Translations under genes and position numbers: made by a program
The notes under the pieces: generated by a model
Told to the model about the DNA's origin: nothing
The model's input: the letters and a program-made list of their open reading frames with translations, nothing else
Database searches by the model: none
In this document: piece by piece, positions 55,072 through 64,000 of the stretch
How positions within the stretch are numbered: position 1 is the stretch's first letter
How the letters are laid out: each line of letters opens with the position of its first letter
Assembly (NCBI GenBank): GCA_964199315.1
Contig: OZ116709.1
Location: forward strand, 5,518,001-5,582,000
Source of the DNA: Orbicella franksi
Lineage: Eukaryota
Length of the DNA: 64,000 bases
Direction: 5' to 3'

Positions 55072-58057
55072 ATGTCAGCCACAAAGCTTGCATTACAGCC
55101 TCAAAAATACTATTACACATCAGAGGATTTCAAATGGCCCAGACATTGGCATTGTAGTGAAGATGGACAACATAAACAGGAGCTAAGCAAGGTATACTGA
55201 TTGTGAAACTTCTCAGCTGTTTTCAGAACTCATTAGGTAAAGTCTGCATACGAGCCAAGTGGCCCATCAGGCCAAAGCATACCTCGGTTTCTGTAGCATG
55301 AAGCGACTAGGAGTATTTCTTCTTCCCCCTCGATGAGATGCTAGTCCATTGCAGGGTTACCCCAAGCATTAAATTTGTCAGTACCCATTTATACACCTAG
55401 GTGGAGAGAGTAGAGGCACTGTGAGAGTAAAGTATCTTGCCCAGGAACACAACACAATGTCCCCGGCCAGGGCTCAAACCCAGTCCGCTCGATCCAAAGT
55501 CAAGAGCACTAACCATGAGGCCACCGTGCCTCCACAGTACTAATTACATGCTGTAAATTATGGTTTTAACAGTCTAGGACTTTGTATATTCTGATTCTGT
55601 AATCATTATCCTGATTCCCTGAAATAGCAGGTACGTGTATGAAATAATGGGAATCCAACATGGCATGGTTGTCTGCAAAAGTTAAATTTCTAAATCATTA
55701 CAATTCTTCTGTTTTTTAATTGGGATACTGTATATAGTTTGACAAGGAGCTTCAAGAAAGATGGGATGCTGCTGTAGATGCTGGTTGTTTTGCTTACAAA
55801 TTGCATCAAGTGGAAGGAAGAGTTGTGCCTGGAAAATACCGACTGTTTGTTCAAGTAAATACGACCAAATCTTTCTTTTGAGCTGGAAAATGACAATGTA
55901 GTAACTTTAAAACCCTCCATGTTGGTAGATTTATGTGGAAGCATGGGAAATTGTGTGTGAGCAAGTCATGATTGCTTTTGATTTTACTTCTGTGTGATTT
56001 GATGACAAAGTGGTACCAGGTTTTTTTAAGCCACCCATGTAGCATAAAGAAAAATATTAAATGCAACATTATTTTAACAATTACTGTGATGCAGGATTTT
56101 AGCTAGGATTTGAAAAGTGGGAGTTCAAATGTGCTACAGGGCTTACTCAAATGAACAATTTATGAGACAACATATGAATTAAAATAAAATGACAAGTGGC
56201 CATCCACAGGATGCCTGGATGCCCATCTGGCTAAAAGCTTGCTGTGATAACAAGTCATTCAAATATACAGTGTATGCTTTTGTACAGACTGAAGTAAGGA
56301 ATTTATCTGATTTAAACAAGCAGATTTCTTTCAAAAGTAATGTGAAAAATTATTAATTGATATTAAATGATAAATATTGTTGAATGTGCAAAATAAATTG
56401 TTTCTCCTAGTTAAATGAAATGAGATTCAACAAACGAAGGCAGCCTGAAGCAATCAGCAGCATTTCCCAGCCATTCAATTCAGAAAAATTTAACTTCACC
56501 AAAGTACACAGCAGAGAGGTATGGAAAATACTTGTATTCTAACCTGTTGACAATTTTATCATTTTTATGATATGTTTCATAAGGTCAATTCTTTTGGCTT
56601 TGTATATTGTAACACTGACGGTAGTACATGTAAGTGTTAAGTTTGGTACCTAGAATACACTAATATCAAAACATTGAATATGTGCATGTTAAACATTGTT
56701 TTATCAGCTACTGAGTGTGTGAGTGACGTGAGCTGCATACATGAACTCTGTTCAGCGGAATAAAATCTCAGATGGCTGGGTACAGCCACCAACTCTAGAG
56801 TGGGTGGCTTTGCACTAGGCTAAATTGAGTTCTGTTGGCACTAGTTGCACCTGAGACCTGTTGTACACCAGTTGGCCGGGTGCTTGTAGGTGAAACCTTA
56901 ATGGTTGAGCAATGACCAGTTAGCAGAATCTTACCTGTTGATTGAACTCCTGTTTGGATTAGATTGCTTTGAAAACATTTTTTTTAGGTAGATCACAGAG
57001 TGTCTCCCAAGAAAATCATGTTTACTAAGTTAACAGATGCTCTCAATGATATACAGTATTGTCTGTTTTTGTCCACAGGTGTTGTTTGAACTTTGTCCAA
57101 AGCACACACCAGCAGCAGCCACTTCAGAAGATGATTGCCATCTTATGATGATAAATGCCAGTCCTATGGAATATGGACATTCTTTGTTGGTGCCAAGTGT
57201 CAGTTCATGGCTTCCTCAGGTATTATTCATTATGCGAAATGCAATTGTCATTGCATTTTGAGTCTCCTTTAGCCGTGTTCTCCACACCCATAACAAACTT
57301 GTTACTTTGTGGGTGAATTCTTTAATCAACAACGGGCAATTTAACCCGTATTATAAAGAGTAAATCAAGCATACTCAGCCATAATAGGTGTTACGGGTTA
57401 TGGCCCTTAATGACAGCCCTGAATTGTGCATTGTGTTTGGGGTAGACAACTGCCTGGAAGTTTCAAGGTGTGAAAAAGATCTGGGATTGAACAAGACATC
57501 ATGATTTGCAGACATGAAAGTTGTAACTTAAAAGACAGTATACAAAAAAATATTAAATATCTTTGATCACACTGACCATCTTGATCCTGCTTTATTGAGT
57601 CCATTTACAATAGCTGAAACACAGTCTTGGCAAGCCAAGTCAGGATGAGGTCTTTTGAAGTGTGAATCAAATGATGTTTAAAACTTCCATTCAGGCAGAT
57701 TGATTGTTAGTCCATGTTATAGTAAAGAGAAAGCAAGCAAAAAAAAAACAAAGTGGTTATAGAGAAAGCAAAACAAAAGAAGAAAAAAAAAGAAGAAAAA
57801 GAAAAAGAAATAAAAACAAAACAAAACAGAAAAGCAAAAACAGCAACAGAACAACATAATTTATTGTACAACTGACAACAACAAAAAAAAGAGTGTAAAT
57901 TTGGATATAAATTACAGGTGAATCCTACATAAATATGCTTTTCAGTTAAAAATGAGATTTTTAGTTTTCTAAATTTTGAATTTATTCAATACATGCAGGT
58001 TCTTACTGAGGAAGCATTGTTGCTGGCTCTAGAGACATCTATGCTAAGTAACCACAG
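55072..58057 (+). CDS. GDPGP1: GDP-D-glucose phosphorylase 1, first five coding exons (gene continues beyond the Gypsy insertion)
   Basis: Exons 55072-55191 (MSATK..YYYTSEDF..LSK), 55738-55854 (FDKELQERWDAAVDAGCFAYKL..PGKYRLFVQ), 56411-56518 (LNEMRFNKRRQP..QPFNSEKFNFTKV), 57079-57219 (INASPMEYGHSLLVP..LPQ), 57999-58057 (VLTEEALLLA). These match GDPGP1/VTC2-family motifs; the HxHxH catalytic exon is not in the window. Confidence 0.85.
55236..55533 (-). mobile_element. tRNA-derived SINE with a conserved core (Nin/Deu-type), in a GDPGP1 intron
   Basis: The minus strand starts GGAGGCACGGTGGCCTCATGGTTAG (A box) ... GGTTTGAGCCCTGG (B box), followed by the core TGGGCAAGATACTTTACTCTCACAGTGCCTCT..CCACCTAGGTGTATAAATGGGTAC. 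Confidence 0.85.
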
Positions 58058-58337
58058 GTAACAAATTGAAACTTAGAAGTCATCTTCAGTATTAGCCATT
58101 AAATGTACAGTAATGTACCTTATTGTAAGTTTATTTCTTGTACTAAAATAGCCACAATTTGGCTGCAATTTAATGATAGAAGTGAGTCAAGGTTTTTGTG
58201 CTTCTTGCAATCATGCCCCTAAGAGTTCCCTCCCCCCCTCCCCCAACCACTGAGTTGTAAAGATTAAAATAACCAGTGAGAATGTTTCCCAAATTAAAAG
58301 GGCCAGTCACATTGTAGTGCACTGCACAAAATGCTGG

Positions 58338-58508
58338 TGTTACAAGTAGAACGTGAGGGACTGGGCCTAGCCCCAGGTTACTTATTATTATGGGATCGAA
58401 AATCCCACGCGTTGGAGAGAATGAAAACGAAACGAGGATCGATGAGAAAAACGTGTTGTCATTGTAGTTTTGTAGTAGTTCCTGTGCGAGATTGAGTAGA
58501 GTGTAACA
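58338..58508 (+). mobile_element. 5' LTR (171 bp) of a Ty3/Gypsy retrotransposon
   Basis: Bounded by the inverted heptamers TGTTACA ... TGTAACA and followed 2 nt later by the PBS. The 3' LTR is outside the window, so the left boundary is inferred. Confidence 0.75.
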
Positions 58509-58510
58509 TT

Positions 58511-58527
58511 TGGTGACCCCGACGTGA
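58511..58527 (+). promoter_or_regulatory. Primer-binding site complementary to tRNA-Trp
   Basis: TGGTGACCCCGACGTGA is the reverse complement of the 3' end of eukaryotic tRNA-Trp (..TCACGTCGGGGTCACCA). Confidence 0.88.
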
Positions 58528-58543
58528 CAAAGAAACGATCGAA

Positions 58544-59911
58544 ATGTCTATAGAAGTCGTCGAAGAGATTCAGATAGAGGTGAGAACAGCAATTTGTCAG
58601 CTTAGCGAAGCGAGTCTTCGAGAAATCTGTGCGGGGCTACATATCGAAGTTAAAGAGACGGATACGGGACGTCTGGCGTTAATACAAATCCTAACGAAAT
58701 ATTTAGACGCCGAAGAACTCGGAACTGAAGCACTAACGAATCTCAGAGAAACAATTAAAGAAAAGAAACCGGCAACGAAGGACGCGAAGAGTGAACAAGA
58801 GGGTGGTGTGAAAACCGAACATGTGGATCAGAAGTCTGCTGTCAAGTCAAGCACAAATGCAGTTACGCCTAAAGAAACCACAGCGATTCCACCGTTCAGG
58901 AAGGAATTTAAAATATCGGGACAGATTGGAGATTCACGTCAGAAAGATCGCTTGAGCTTTACCAGTCTTGCTCACCAAATTAACGCTGGATTGAAACGGG
59001 GCTATAAAGAAGAAGAAATTGTCGAGGCCGTTATTCGAGCCATCAATCCAGGCCTTAGATTGAGGAGCTACTTGGAAGGTAAGCCCGATCTAGATCTTGC
59101 CAGATTACGTAAAATACTCCGGTCACATTACCAAGAAAGGGGGGCTACGGAAATGTATCAGCTGCTCAGTTCGGCAGTACAGGAAGCTGGGGAGACCCCT
59201 CAGGACTTTCTTGTTCGCCTCCTTGATCTAAAGCAGAAAGTACTGTTTGCATCTCAAGAAGCAGGATCTGATTTGAAGTATGACCCAAAGCTGGTACAGT
59301 GCATGTTTCTGCATTCATTATTAACTGGGTTACGGAATGATAACATTAAAATGGAGATAAAACCATGCCTGCAAAACACCCAAGTGGAAGATGAAGAACT
59401 TTTTGAGAAATTGAATGCAGCAGTTAGTAATGAAACAGAAAGAATGCAGAAGCTTGGTTCCCGTCATGACCAGCTCACAAACCGAACCCCCACACAGCTT
59501 GTAGCTCAATTGGCCACCCATGACGACAGCCATGCCTCAGTTGAAGGTAAAACCCCAGAAAAGCCACCAAAAGTTAACCTTCTTACTGAAGTTAGAGAGT
59601 TGAAAGCGGAATTGGCTGCTATCCGGGAGGGCATGGAACAACAAAGCCGCGCTAGCCCTCACCCACAGTACAACCCTGTAGAGCAAGGGAGGGTTCGCCC
59701 TAGAGGGTGCTGGAATTGTGAAAGACAAGGAAGGGGTTTCCGTTGCAACCATTGTTTCAACTGTGGTGATGTCGGCCACTTCAGTTACCAATGCCTAAGG
59801 TCAAGCCGAAGGGGCTATAACTCAGCAAGCCCCCAGGGAAACAGACAAGGGTTGCCCCCACGGGACAAGGAGCAGCCCCCCCGATTCATGAGCAGTCCCA
59901 ACAATGCATGA
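58544..59911 (+). CDS. gag: Gypsy Gag (455 aa) with C-terminal CCHC zinc knuckle
   Basis: Intact ORF right after the PBS; capsid-like core ([30 protein letters not shown]) and [14 protein letters not shown]. Confidence 0.92.
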
Positions 59912-62900
59912 ACTGTGGAAAGAGGGAGGATTGGGCACATCAATACTTGCGGTGTTCACAGTGCCATACTAGCCACTATTGTTCAAAAGTTTGTCAAAGG
60001 GAACATTGGGAGAAGCATAAGAAACTATGTCAAGCCATTAGCGAAGTTGAACTGAGGGAAAGGGCAAGTGTTGAAACATTGAAAACGTCGTTCAGTTCCC
60101 ACCTAACCCCGAGACAACGCTCTAAACTCACCAAATTAGTGGGAAGAAAATGTGTGGTTTCCTGCTTGATTCAAGGGGAAAAGGTGGATGCCCTGTGGGA
60201 TACCAGAGCTCAAGTTTGTGTTGTGTCCAAACATTGGAAAGAAATTAACCTACCAAACGAGCCAGTAAGAGACATAAGCGAGTTATTGGGGGAAGATGGA
60301 TTAAATCTCCAGGCCGTGAACGGTACAAAAATCGCATATGATGGCTGGATTGAGGTAGAGTTCCAGTTGGTTGGGGAGGACGGGTACTCGGAGCCATTGA
60401 CAGTACCCATACTAATAGGAAGTGAAGATAATCAGGAGTATCCCATCATCGGCTTTAATGTCATTGAAGAGGTCATTAAGAGGAGTAGTAGCCCCAACAC
60501 AACCAGCCTATTGCCCCGAATAGTGAATGACTCGTTCCCATCTGAGAAAGAGGGCGAAGCAAGAGCGCTGGTTAATTTCATCCAAAGTATGGATGATGAA
60601 GCTGACACCGGTATGCTCAGAGTCGGCAGACAAGACATACGTGTCCCACCAGGAGAGACTGTGAGAGTCAAATGTCAGGTACACTTTGGACTATTAGAAG
60701 AAGATTTGCCTGTTGTGTTTGAGCCCAAAGAGGAAGGGGCGTGGCCTGAGGGGCTAGAAGTTCAGGGCTGTCTCCACCGAATCTCCCCGAGGTCTTCGAG
60801 CCGAATGTATGTTCCAGTATGCAACAACACCGAACGAGAGATGACCTTACGTAGGCGGACAGAACTGGGCACTATACAGTTAGTGCAGTCCGTCACGCCA
60901 CTGCCAGTCGAAGCTGAACAGAAACAAGAGAAAGAGGAAGGTGAAACTTGGAGTGAGGCAACCAGTTATGAGTGGGAGCCAAGTCAGCCCGAACAAAGTA
61001 AAGCAAAGTGGACTCCCCCAGTTGACTTGAGCCATTTGTCAAGTGAGCAACGGGTGATTGTCAAGGAGATGTTGAGGGAAGAATCCGGGGCCTTCGCTAT
61101 AGATGATGGTGACATTGGATGTGCCGAACATTTGAAATTGGAAATCAACCTGAGAGATGACGTCCCAGTACAAAAAACATACAATTCAATTCCAAAGCCC
61201 TTGTACGAAGAGGTAAAGTCACACTTGCAGGATATGATCAATCGTGGTTGGATAAGCAACTCAAAGTCACCCTACTCTTCCCCAGTGGTGTGTGTGAGAA
61301 AAAAAGACGGCAGTCTGAGACTATGTGTTGACTATAGGCAGTTAAACAGCAAAACTGAGGATGACCGCCAGCCCATCCCTCGCATCCAAGACATCCTGAA
61401 TAGTCTCAGTGGGAACACTTACTTTTCAGTGTTAGACCAAGGAAAGGCATATCATCAAGGATTCGTAGCAGAAGAACACCGACATCTAACAGCGTTCATC
61501 ACCCCCTGGGGTTTATACCAGTGGAACCGGATTCCTTTTGGCCTTAAAAATGCACCGGCAGCTTACCAGAGGTACATGGAGAAATGCCTAGAAGGTCTCC
61601 GCGATGAAATATGTATTCCATATCTTGATGATGTCCTGGTGTACAGTAGAACATTTTCTGAGCATGTAGACAATGTGCGAAAGGTACTTAAACGTTTGCA
61701 GGAGTATGGTATCAAGTTGAAGCCAAAGAAATGTGAGTTGTTTAAGCCCCGTGTTCGTTACTTAGGCAGAATAGTCTCAGCAGATGGCTACACGATGGAC
61801 TCAGCAGACGTTGCAGCAGTGGCAGCCCTTAAGGAAACTAAACCAAGAACTGTTGGTGAATTGCGCAAACTCCTGGGTTTCATAAGCTATTACCGCCAAT
61901 ATATTCGCGACTTCTCCAGATTAGCCAAACCCCTTTATGACCTACTTTCAGTTAAAGAATGCAGTGACCAGCCCAGCAGAGCTAAAGGACAGAAAGAGCA
62001 CCCCAAGTGGACGTTGCCGACATCGAAAGGACAATCGTCATCAAATCACAAAATCCCGTGGAATGAAAGACACCAAGAGCGATTAAACTTCCTAATTGAA
62101 CTTCTTATGCAGCCAGGGGTAATGGCTTACCCTGACTTTGAACGACCATTTGTACTGCACACGGATGCCTCAAGCGAAGGACTTGGGGCGGTGCTCTACC
62201 AAGAACAAGGGGGGAAATTGACAGTTGTTGGCTATGGCTCAAGGACATTGACGCCGGCGGAACGGAACTACCACTTGCACTCAGGAAAGTTAGAATTCTT
62301 GGCCCTAAAGTGGGCAATTACTGACAAATTCAGGGATTACTTATTCTATGCTCCATCCTTCGCTGTTTTCACTGACAATAACCCGTTAACGTATGTGATG
62401 TCATCAGCAAAGTTGAATGCCACGGGGCATCGGTGGGTGGCCGAGTTAGCGGATTATAACTTTACAATCAAGTACCGACCGGGCAAGACTAATGTTGACG
62501 CGGATGTTCTGTCAAGAATCCCATTGGACATAGACAAGTATATGAGCGATTGTACAGAGGAAGTACCCAAAGATGTCCTTGAAGCAACCGTGGAAGCAGT
62601 AAGGGAACAGGCAAAAGGCACAATCCCATGGGTTACGGCAATTGCCGCAGACTTGACAACTCCTGAACCGACATTAAAGGATCTGAATCTAAGACCCTTC
62701 AGCCCTAGTGAAATCAAGGAGGCACAGCACTCGGATAGTGCTATATGCCGCGTGCTTTACTACAAGACACACGGGATCAAACCGGGTGGTGGCCAACTGA
62801 AGAATGAACCCCATGGAGTTACCAACCTTATGAGAGAATGGAAGAAACTGGAAGTTGATGAACATGGTATCCTGCGACGAAGAACAAGCTCTAAGATACA

Positions 62901-64000
62901 ATTAGTTCTGCCACACAACTTCATCCCAGTGGTACTTAAAGAACTACACACAGAGATGGGACACCTTGGAGTGGAGAGAGTCGCAGAACTTGCAAGGTCC
63001 CGCTTCTACTGGCCACATATGTACCGTGACATAGAGTATTTTGTGACACAACGTTGCAGATGCATCAAACAGAAGAAACCAAACACAGTCACGAAAGCAC
63101 CTATGATGCACCTGATGACATCAGCACCCTTTGAAGTAGTTTCCATTGATTTTCTGCATCTGGACAAGAGCAAAGGTGGATATGAATATGTACTGCTGAT
63201 TGTTGATAACTTTACCAAATATGCCCAAGCCTTTGCAACGCGCAACAAGACGGCCCGCACTGCTGCTGAGAAGATCTACAATGAGTTTATCCCAAGGTTC
63301 GGTTTCCCAGCACGAATACATCACGACCAAGGTGGTGAGTTTGAAAACAAATTGTTCCACAACCTAGAACGTCTCAGTGGAGTTGCCAGCTCGCGAACCA
63401 CTCTATACCACCCACAGGGCAATGGCCAGGTAGAACGCATGAACCGAACGTTACTCTCGATGCTAAGGACCCTCCCGGAGGAAAAGAAATCGAACTGGAA
63501 AGATTCCTTAAACAAGCTTATACATGCGTACAACTGCACAAGACACGAAACGACTGGGTTCTCGCCATTTTACCTGATGTTTGGCCGTTCCCCACGATTA
63601 CCAGTTGATTTGCTGTTTGACCTAGACAACGACCTTCAACAGGGTGATTACCAGGACTATGTAAAGACGTGGCAAGCAGATATGAGACGGGCCTACGACC
63701 TAGCATCTAGGAACACCCAGAAATCGTCAGCCAGGAGTAAAGTGTATTACGACAAGAAGGCTTCCGCAGCAGTCCTATTCCCCGGCGACCGCGTACTTGT
63801 TAGAAACCTTTCAGAAAGGGGAGGACCTGGAAAGCTCCGTTCACACTGGGAAGAGCAAATTTATGTAGTTGAGGAACGCATATCTGATAGTCCAGTCTAT
63901 CGAGTAAAGCCAGAACTTGGCCGTGGGAAACAACGAGTGTTACACCGTAACTTGCTACTTCTTTGTGATGCTTTACCACTGCCTAAACCAACGAGAGCAT
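59836..64000 (+). CDS. pol: Gypsy Pol in the -1 frame: MYND finger, aspartic protease, dUTPase-like insert, RT, RNase H, integrase; runs off the window end
   Basis: Translated by hand with no stop from 59836 to 64000. LWDTRAQV (60193-60216), [12 protein letters not shown] (61621), LHTDAS, integrase H-x4-H..CxC, SIDF/HHDQG/QVERMN DDE core, GPY/F-like [11 protein letters not shown]. Confidence 0.93.

Follow-up and report, generated by a model that had tools for sequence, protein, structure and literature searches.

We report that a complete MYND zinc finger is encoded in the Gag-Pol transframe region of a Ty3/Gypsy long terminal repeat (LTR) retrotransposon of the coral Orbicella franksi. The element fills the final 5.7 kb of a 64,000-nucleotide stretch of contig OZ116709.1 (positions 5,518,001 to 5,582,000; this whole stretch is hereafter called the window) and continues past its end. 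The remainder was taken from the same contig, and the span covered corresponds to window positions 57001-67000. From the evidence presented below, we consider it likely that the finger is a selected domain, reached by −1 ribosomal frameshifting, acquired once and most likely docking a host peptide. The features that surround the finger, all on the + strand, are as follows.

58544-59911, +: gag open reading frame (ORF) of 455 amino acids, from the ORF list, with its TGA stop at 59909-59911
about 59750-59794, +: single canonical CCHC knuckle of gag, after a Cys-rich stretch (pattern in the translation)
59821-64569, +: pol frame of 1582 codons, open from 59821 and running beyond the window end (64000)
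59836-59842, +: slippery heptamer G GGA AAC, in phase with gag, whose frame reads Gln-Gly-Asn across CA G GGA AAC; putative −1 ribosomal frameshift site
59849-59878, +: stem-loop with a 7-bp stem (arms 59849-59855 and 59872-59878), identified by covariation, putative frameshift stimulator
59876-59882, +: tract of seven C (C7) overlapping the 3' arm of the stem, with a length that differs among copies
59905-60030, +: MYND zinc finger, Pol-frame residues 29-70, then a long helix predicted to extend to about residue 89 (Pfam, structure matches)
60097-60495 (start approximate), +: retropepsin-type protease, catalytic triad at 60199-60207 (structure model)

Read in the frame of position 59905, the translation follows the pattern C-x2-C-x12-C-x2-C-x5-C-x3-C-x7-H-x3-C. 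The eight ligands are seven cysteines and the histidine of the H-x3-C motif, i.e., a C4-C2HC arrangement with the spacing of the MYND family, while the histidine of the 'HW' pair is a non-ligand, which is replaced by Gln, Asp or other residues in relatives. The Pfam profile zf-MYND (PF01753, gathering score 22.7) matched the whole Pol with 34.4 bits and a 110-residue piece of it with 39 bits (E 8.4e-10). Both the exact pattern and the profile score bear out the initial annotation of this DNA, made from the letters of the window, which had claimed a complete MYND finger with all eight ligands. Among sequences with solved structures, the finger comes closest to the MYND domains of CBFA2T1/ETO and DEAF1, and a database look-up pointed to a cnidarian zf-MYND cluster (score 0.88), which we take as a lead only. 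A Foldseek search with an AlphaFold2 (AF2) model of Pol residues 1-250 (predicted local distance difference test, pLDDT, 84) returned the protease only, with matches to the proteases of equine infectious anaemia virus (EIAV), human immunodeficiency virus (HIV) and feline immunodeficiency virus (FIV) and to Ddi1. The finger was therefore modelled separately (AF2, pLDDT 85). The best 44 Foldseek matches of this second model were all MYND domains, among them those of SMYD1-3, ETO, ETO2, ZMYND10 and DEAF1, with root-mean-square deviations of 0.9-2.1 Å over 36-50 residues; the E-values were weak, the domain being small. The predicted structure has the beta-beta-alpha cross-brace fold of solved MYND domains.

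The finger can be reached by the ribosome through a −1 frameshift signal. The pol frame is shifted by −1 with respect to gag, and the finger starts 21 codons past the slippery heptamer. The sequence offers the parts that define a −1 cassette, namely an X XXY YYZ heptamer in the zero frame, a spacer of 5-8 nt (here 6 nt between heptamer and stem) and a downstream structure. An alignment of 16 copies from diverged lineages over the homologous 48 nt showed changes on both sides in six of the seven pairs of the stem, and 89% of the cells were paired, vs at most 52% when the partner strand was slid over the same 16 sequences. The folding energy of the frameshift region was not significant (minimum free energy z-score 0.37). 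At the same place and in the same phase, sister lineages and elements of other hosts carry GUUAAAC, UUUAAAC, UUUAAAU or GGAAAAC. Similarly, elements from other assemblies, including one on a frog chromosome, display GGGAAAC or UUUAAAU, a spacer, a perfect 7-bp stem and then the finger. The initial annotation had placed the finger between the frameshift and the protease, overlapping the last gag codons, and had proposed that it is made in Gag-Pol only. We found indeed that it lies between the heptamer (59836-59842) and the protease (about 60097), with its first Cys codon overlapping the final codons of gag, a position downstream of the frameshift and upstream of the protease that restricts its production to Gag-Pol.

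Two other routes to Pol were considered and ruled out. The C7 tract is absent from sister lineages, in which the heptamer and the stem are conserved, and it was rejected as the shift site. The internal ATG in the finger, which gene callers take as the start of Pol (for instance in the protein P0001), was rejected as well, since this methionine gives way to Val, Lys or Asn in sister lineages. The first Cys pair, which is upstream of that methionine, is conserved across the sister lineages. Because sister lineages without the methionine keep this upstream Cys pair, only the frameshift route yields the whole finger.

Two observations concern the same junction. The C tract is C8, C9 or C17 in other copies (L030 and L058-L060 were noted), and some of its variants fuse gag and pol in one frame, bypassing the frameshift, with open frames of 2017 and 1872 amino acids. 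In the relative L062, a Glu/Lys-rich insertion of 130 residues (2152-2541) separates the frameshift site from the finger, and the nucleocapsid-protease junction seems to tolerate insertions.

Four results concern the copies and sister lineages in the coral genome. First, a six-frame genome search with the first 170 Pol residues gave 81 matches. Of these, 29 share 98-100% identity, and a full-length open frame is preserved in about 20 of the 29. The differing flanks indicate at least 26 independent near-identical insertions. Second, the finger is intact in 27 of the 29 near-identical copies, the other two having one disabling change each; because these 27 copies at differently flanked sites carry the same finger, it is not a product of chance. 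Third, the same gag / −1 / pol layout and all eight ligands are found in each of at least eight other lineages, whose Pol identity is 38-60%, and the loss of ligands among diverged copies is limited to otherwise decayed ones (with stops). The finger is not absent or degenerate in sister copies, the outcome that the initial annotation had named as contrary to its view. Fourth, the comparison of the window copy with the L040 lineage across the finger gave a proportion of nonsynonymous differences (pN) of 0.118 and of synonymous differences (pS) of 0.725. As judged from these sequence comparisons, the finger is under purifying selection.

Four of the copies (L020-L023, contig C7, 5.92-6.10 Mb) have identical flanks and are about 60.3 kb apart; they sit in a four-unit tandem segmental duplication.

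The finger is not private to this coral. A profile of the finger and the protease, searched against 1.84 billion representative proteins, retrieved 354 clusters at E ≤ 1e-30; in the majority of the best 150, a single match covers both the finger and the protease. Among the full-length representatives tested, zf-MYND, reverse transcriptase (RT) and RNase H occur in 7/7 and integrase in 5/7. A word search with the full-length Pol alignment gave 573 hits. PF01753 is present in most of the best 120 of them, and nearly all those of the best 120 without it are gene models that begin at an ATG within or past the finger. The hosts include the corals Oculina patagonica and Stylophora pistillata, the teleosts Nothobranchius furzeri and Metynnis hypsauchen, and the frog Hyperolius riggenbachi. 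Two lineages have no finger: in a family of the amphioxus Branchiostoma belcheri, a Gln/Thr/Asn-rich linker replaces it, and in a group with a single ORF (gag + pol), only the last Cys and the helix remain. Both nest, in the Pol tree, in a well-supported clade that also contains finger-bearing rows, and finger-bearing rows stand on either side of the midpoint root. Because the finger-less lineages sit inside the finger-bearing tree, at least two losses are to be counted, and the simplest reading of this midpoint-rooted tree would be one old gain followed by these losses. The proposal of the initial annotation that the element captured a host domain remains plausible, with the qualification that the event is old, ancestral to the coral, fish and frog clade, and not specific to the element of the window.

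In the literature searched, MYND appears only in unrelated contexts, and we found no account of an LTR retrotransposon whose Gag-Pol contains such a finger; this agrees with the initial statement that MYND is not a standard domain of LTR elements. Database annotation pipelines already record PF01753 on individual proteins of the clade. As far as this literature goes, the finger is an undescribed, clade-wide accessory domain. To our knowledge, accessory domains in LTR-retrotransposon polyproteins are rare, the known ones being chromodomains and extra RNase H, each of which reveals dealings between element and host. The present finger marks a large and active clade with members in corals, fishes and a frog.

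Two relatives deserve mention here. The coral element and that of the frog (L065 / P0241) have strikingly similar Gag cores, with long shared stretches around FKISGQIG...SLAHQI, and their Pol proteins are 48% identical; this likeness suggests either a very strong constraint or a horizontal spread between phyla. In the finger-bearing relative P0103, residues 126-163, upstream of the finger, match PP1_bind (PF15276) with 37 bits (cut-off 27); the region may hold a second motif for docking to host proteins.

As a step towards the function of the finger, we compared it with MYND domains of known ligand. In ETO and DEAF1, the residues binding the PPPLI peptide of SMRT/NCoR are a Ser/Thr after Cys3, a Gln after Cys6 and a Trp four residues further (PMC3555993). 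The window copy has all three. Among the 100 readable fingers of the best 150 hits, the contact positions are occupied by Ser/Thr in 65, Gln in 95 and Trp in 86, and a Tyr precedes the fifth Cys in 96. This conservation supports the existence of a conserved peptide-docking surface. Gag and pol were inspected for a ligand of the PxLxP, PPxL or PxLE kind; none of the PxLxP type was found, just two chance PxL[ED] strings. Because gag and pol are devoid of PxLxP, a host partner is likelier than an internal one, and the finger most likely docks a proline-rich host peptide of the PxLxP / PPPLI type.

The finger of the coral element shares with the MYND domains of ETO/CBFA2T1 (NHR4), DEAF1 and SMYD1-3 the ligand pattern and spacing, the modelled fold and the Ser/Thr-Gln-Trp positions of peptide contact (PMC3555993). 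These are host proteins of transcription and chromatin, whereas the coral finger belongs to the polyprotein of a retrotransposon, is translated only after a frameshift, and leads into a long helix and a retropepsin. Another likeness is found in BS69/ZMYND11, in which a coiled-coil-MYND region combines a MYND finger with a long helix and is the target of viral PxLxP motifs (E1A, EBNA2), thereby linking MYND with viruses (PMC4742278). In that case, the virus gives the peptide, the host gives the finger and the helix precedes it, whereas in the coral element the mobile element gives the finger and the helix follows.

We propose the following sequence of events. Ribosomes translating gag would occasionally slip back by one base at G GGA AAC, aided by the stem-loop 6 nt downstream. 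The shifted ribosomes would enter the finger 21 codons on, and then translate the long helix, the protease, RT, RNase H and integrase. The finger would be carried only by the minority Gag-Pol molecules, between nucleocapsid and protease, where it would offer a small zinc-stabilised platform to a short proline-rich peptide of another protein, probably of the host. It would have been acquired a single time, before the divergence of the large coral/teleost/frog clade, and lost later in at least two lineages.

Several points weigh against this proposal. We infer both the −1 frameshifting and the peptide docking, as well as the host partner, from the sequence. Some MYND domains, such as that of BS69, bind other motifs or use other surfaces (PMC3555993). 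Once Gag-Pol is processed, the finger may stay on the nucleocapsid, stay on the protease or be a free peptide. Lastly, because two lineages do without it, the finger is not essential for transposition as such.

What the docking would serve can be viewed in different ways. It is possible, albeit tentative, that the finger and its helix act as a regulator specific to Gag-Pol, controlling the dimerisation or autoprocessing of the protease or recruiting a chaperone or packaging factor. HIV-1 p6* occupies the same place, after a −1 frameshift and between nucleocapsid and protease, and is likewise limited to Gag-Pol. It is short and unstructured, and acts on the activation of the protease; the coral transframe region, unlike p6*, is a folded zinc domain (as predicted) of a known protein-binding family. 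Consistent with a regulator, the finger is produced in Gag-Pol only and lies directly upstream of the protease, to which it is joined by the conserved helix and a SHLTP...LVGxKC motif. Furthermore, some MYND domains bind chaperone co-factors, as PHD2 does with p23/FKBP38. The MYND domain of DEAF1 self-associates in vitro (PMC3555993). The homodimer prediction for residues 25-96 (finger + helix) gave a score of 0.03, which counts neither way. It is worth noting, however, that the finger-less lineages retain the same protease and linker, and that the fit of such a regulator, drawn by analogy, is one of position.

It is rather unlikely, in our opinion, that the finger targets integration, as the initial annotation had proposed among other roles, by linking the pre-integration complex to a chromatin protein or a co-repressor, and thereby chooses the insertion sites as chromoviral chromodomains do. 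Chromatin tethers derived from Gag exist in retroviruses, as exemplified by p12 of murine leukaemia virus (MLV) and by foamy virus Gag. The peptide-contact residues of the finger are conserved, and most partners of animal MYND domains are co-repressors of chromatin, for example NCoR/SMRT and subunits of NuRD (PMC3555993; PDB 9de2). The chromodomain of chromoviruses and the integrase modules of Ty5, Ty1 and Ty3 are likewise host-type interaction modules fixed in the Pol of a clade of LTR retrotransposons. They stand at the C-terminus of integrase and travel with the cDNA, whereas the coral finger precedes the protease, at the end of Pol opposite to integrase, and the protease would cut the two apart. 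Moreover, no target bias was seen: 20 upstream flanks of 2 kb show no tRNA gene, shared repeat or nested copies, with a G+C content of 0.396 vs 0.394 for the background, and the 17-20 nt beside 29 LTRs show no consensus. The analogy with chromodomains that had been drawn in the initial annotation is weakened by the position of the finger and by these flanks. We are equally doubtful that the finger hooks the element onto a co-repressor or chromatin complex of the host, with PxLxP partners of the NCoR/SMRT or NuRD type, and steers its landing site or its silencing. If such a hook were real, it would constitute a second, independently evolved Ty3/Gypsy targeting system, on the side of Gag and not of integrase, extending from cnidarians to vertebrates.

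That the finger is a neutral passenger in decay, or an extra knuckle extending the nucleocapsid to bind RNA and not protein, is highly improbable: it does follow the CCHC knuckle directly and was lost in two lineages, but its ligands and the Tyr, Gln and Trp signature residues are conserved from coral to frog, pN is far under pS across it, and the MYND domain of DEAF1 gave no specific DNA binding (PMC3555993).

Returning to a finger that docks a host peptide, we rank its conceivable roles as follows: Gag-Pol folding, assembly or protease timing, before chromatin tethering of the integration complex, and then interference with silencing. A 42-residue domain with a well-understood mode of binding provides a concrete handle for finding the partner, and the finger-less sister lineages offer a natural comparison for effects on integration sites or silencing.

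Apart from its finger, the element is an ordinary young Gypsy copy. Its other features, all on the + strand, are listed below.

58334-58337, +: target-site duplication CTGG, 4 bp (read directly), repeated at 65020-65023, past the end of the window
58338-58508, +: 5' LTR of 171 bp with termini TGTTACA...TGTAACA (direct repeat)
58511-58527, +: primer-binding site complementary to the 3' end of tRNA-Trp(CCA)
61294-61770, +: reverse transcriptase, RVT_1 (Pfam, 119.7 bits)
62059-62457, +: RNase H, RT_RNaseH and RT_RNaseH_2 (Pfam, 96 and 87 bits)
62911-63414, +: integrase, H2C2 zinc domain and rve core (Pfam)

The 3' LTR, outside the window at 64849-65019, differs from the 5' LTR by one base, and is preceded by the polypurine tract GGAGGGGAG. 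The TG...CA LTRs, the short target duplication, the tRNA primer site and the polypurine tract are those of Ty3/Gypsy elements (Metaviridae), as is the Pol order protease - RT - RNase H - integrase. The zf-CCHC profile scored 18.2 bits on the gag knuckle, slightly below the cut-off of 20.8. No chromodomain was found by Pfam in the 1393 Pol residues of the window, nor in the precomputed Pfam lists of full-length relatives, through which alone the Pol tail was covered; the element does not display the chromodomain at the C-terminus of integrase by which chromoviruses are defined.

The protease of the window copy differs from its relatives. The third residue of its triad (60199-60207) deviates in this copy alone and is canonical in 27 sister copies and in the seven loci of diverged lineages with a readable triad. 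Because the triad deviates where sister copies and diverged loci keep the canonical one, the window copy, though fully open, probably has an inactive protease.

In the primer-binding site, the 14-nt complement corresponds to the 3' end of tRNA-Trp genes clustered on contig C8. The segment 19306492-19357326 of that contig holds 18 matches to the tRNA-Trp 3' end within 51 kb, two of which were checked and are tRNA-Trp(CCA) genes; the cluster is probably a tRNA-Trp gene array. A weak Rfam match to the primer-binding-site element of Rous sarcoma virus (RSV) at window positions 58477-58536 (20.8 bits vs a gathering score of 47, i.e., sub-threshold) is consistent with the common use of tRNA-Trp but says no more than that. 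An A-rich low-complexity tract made of AAAAG/AAAAC units occupies window positions 57765-57854, about 500 bp before the element.

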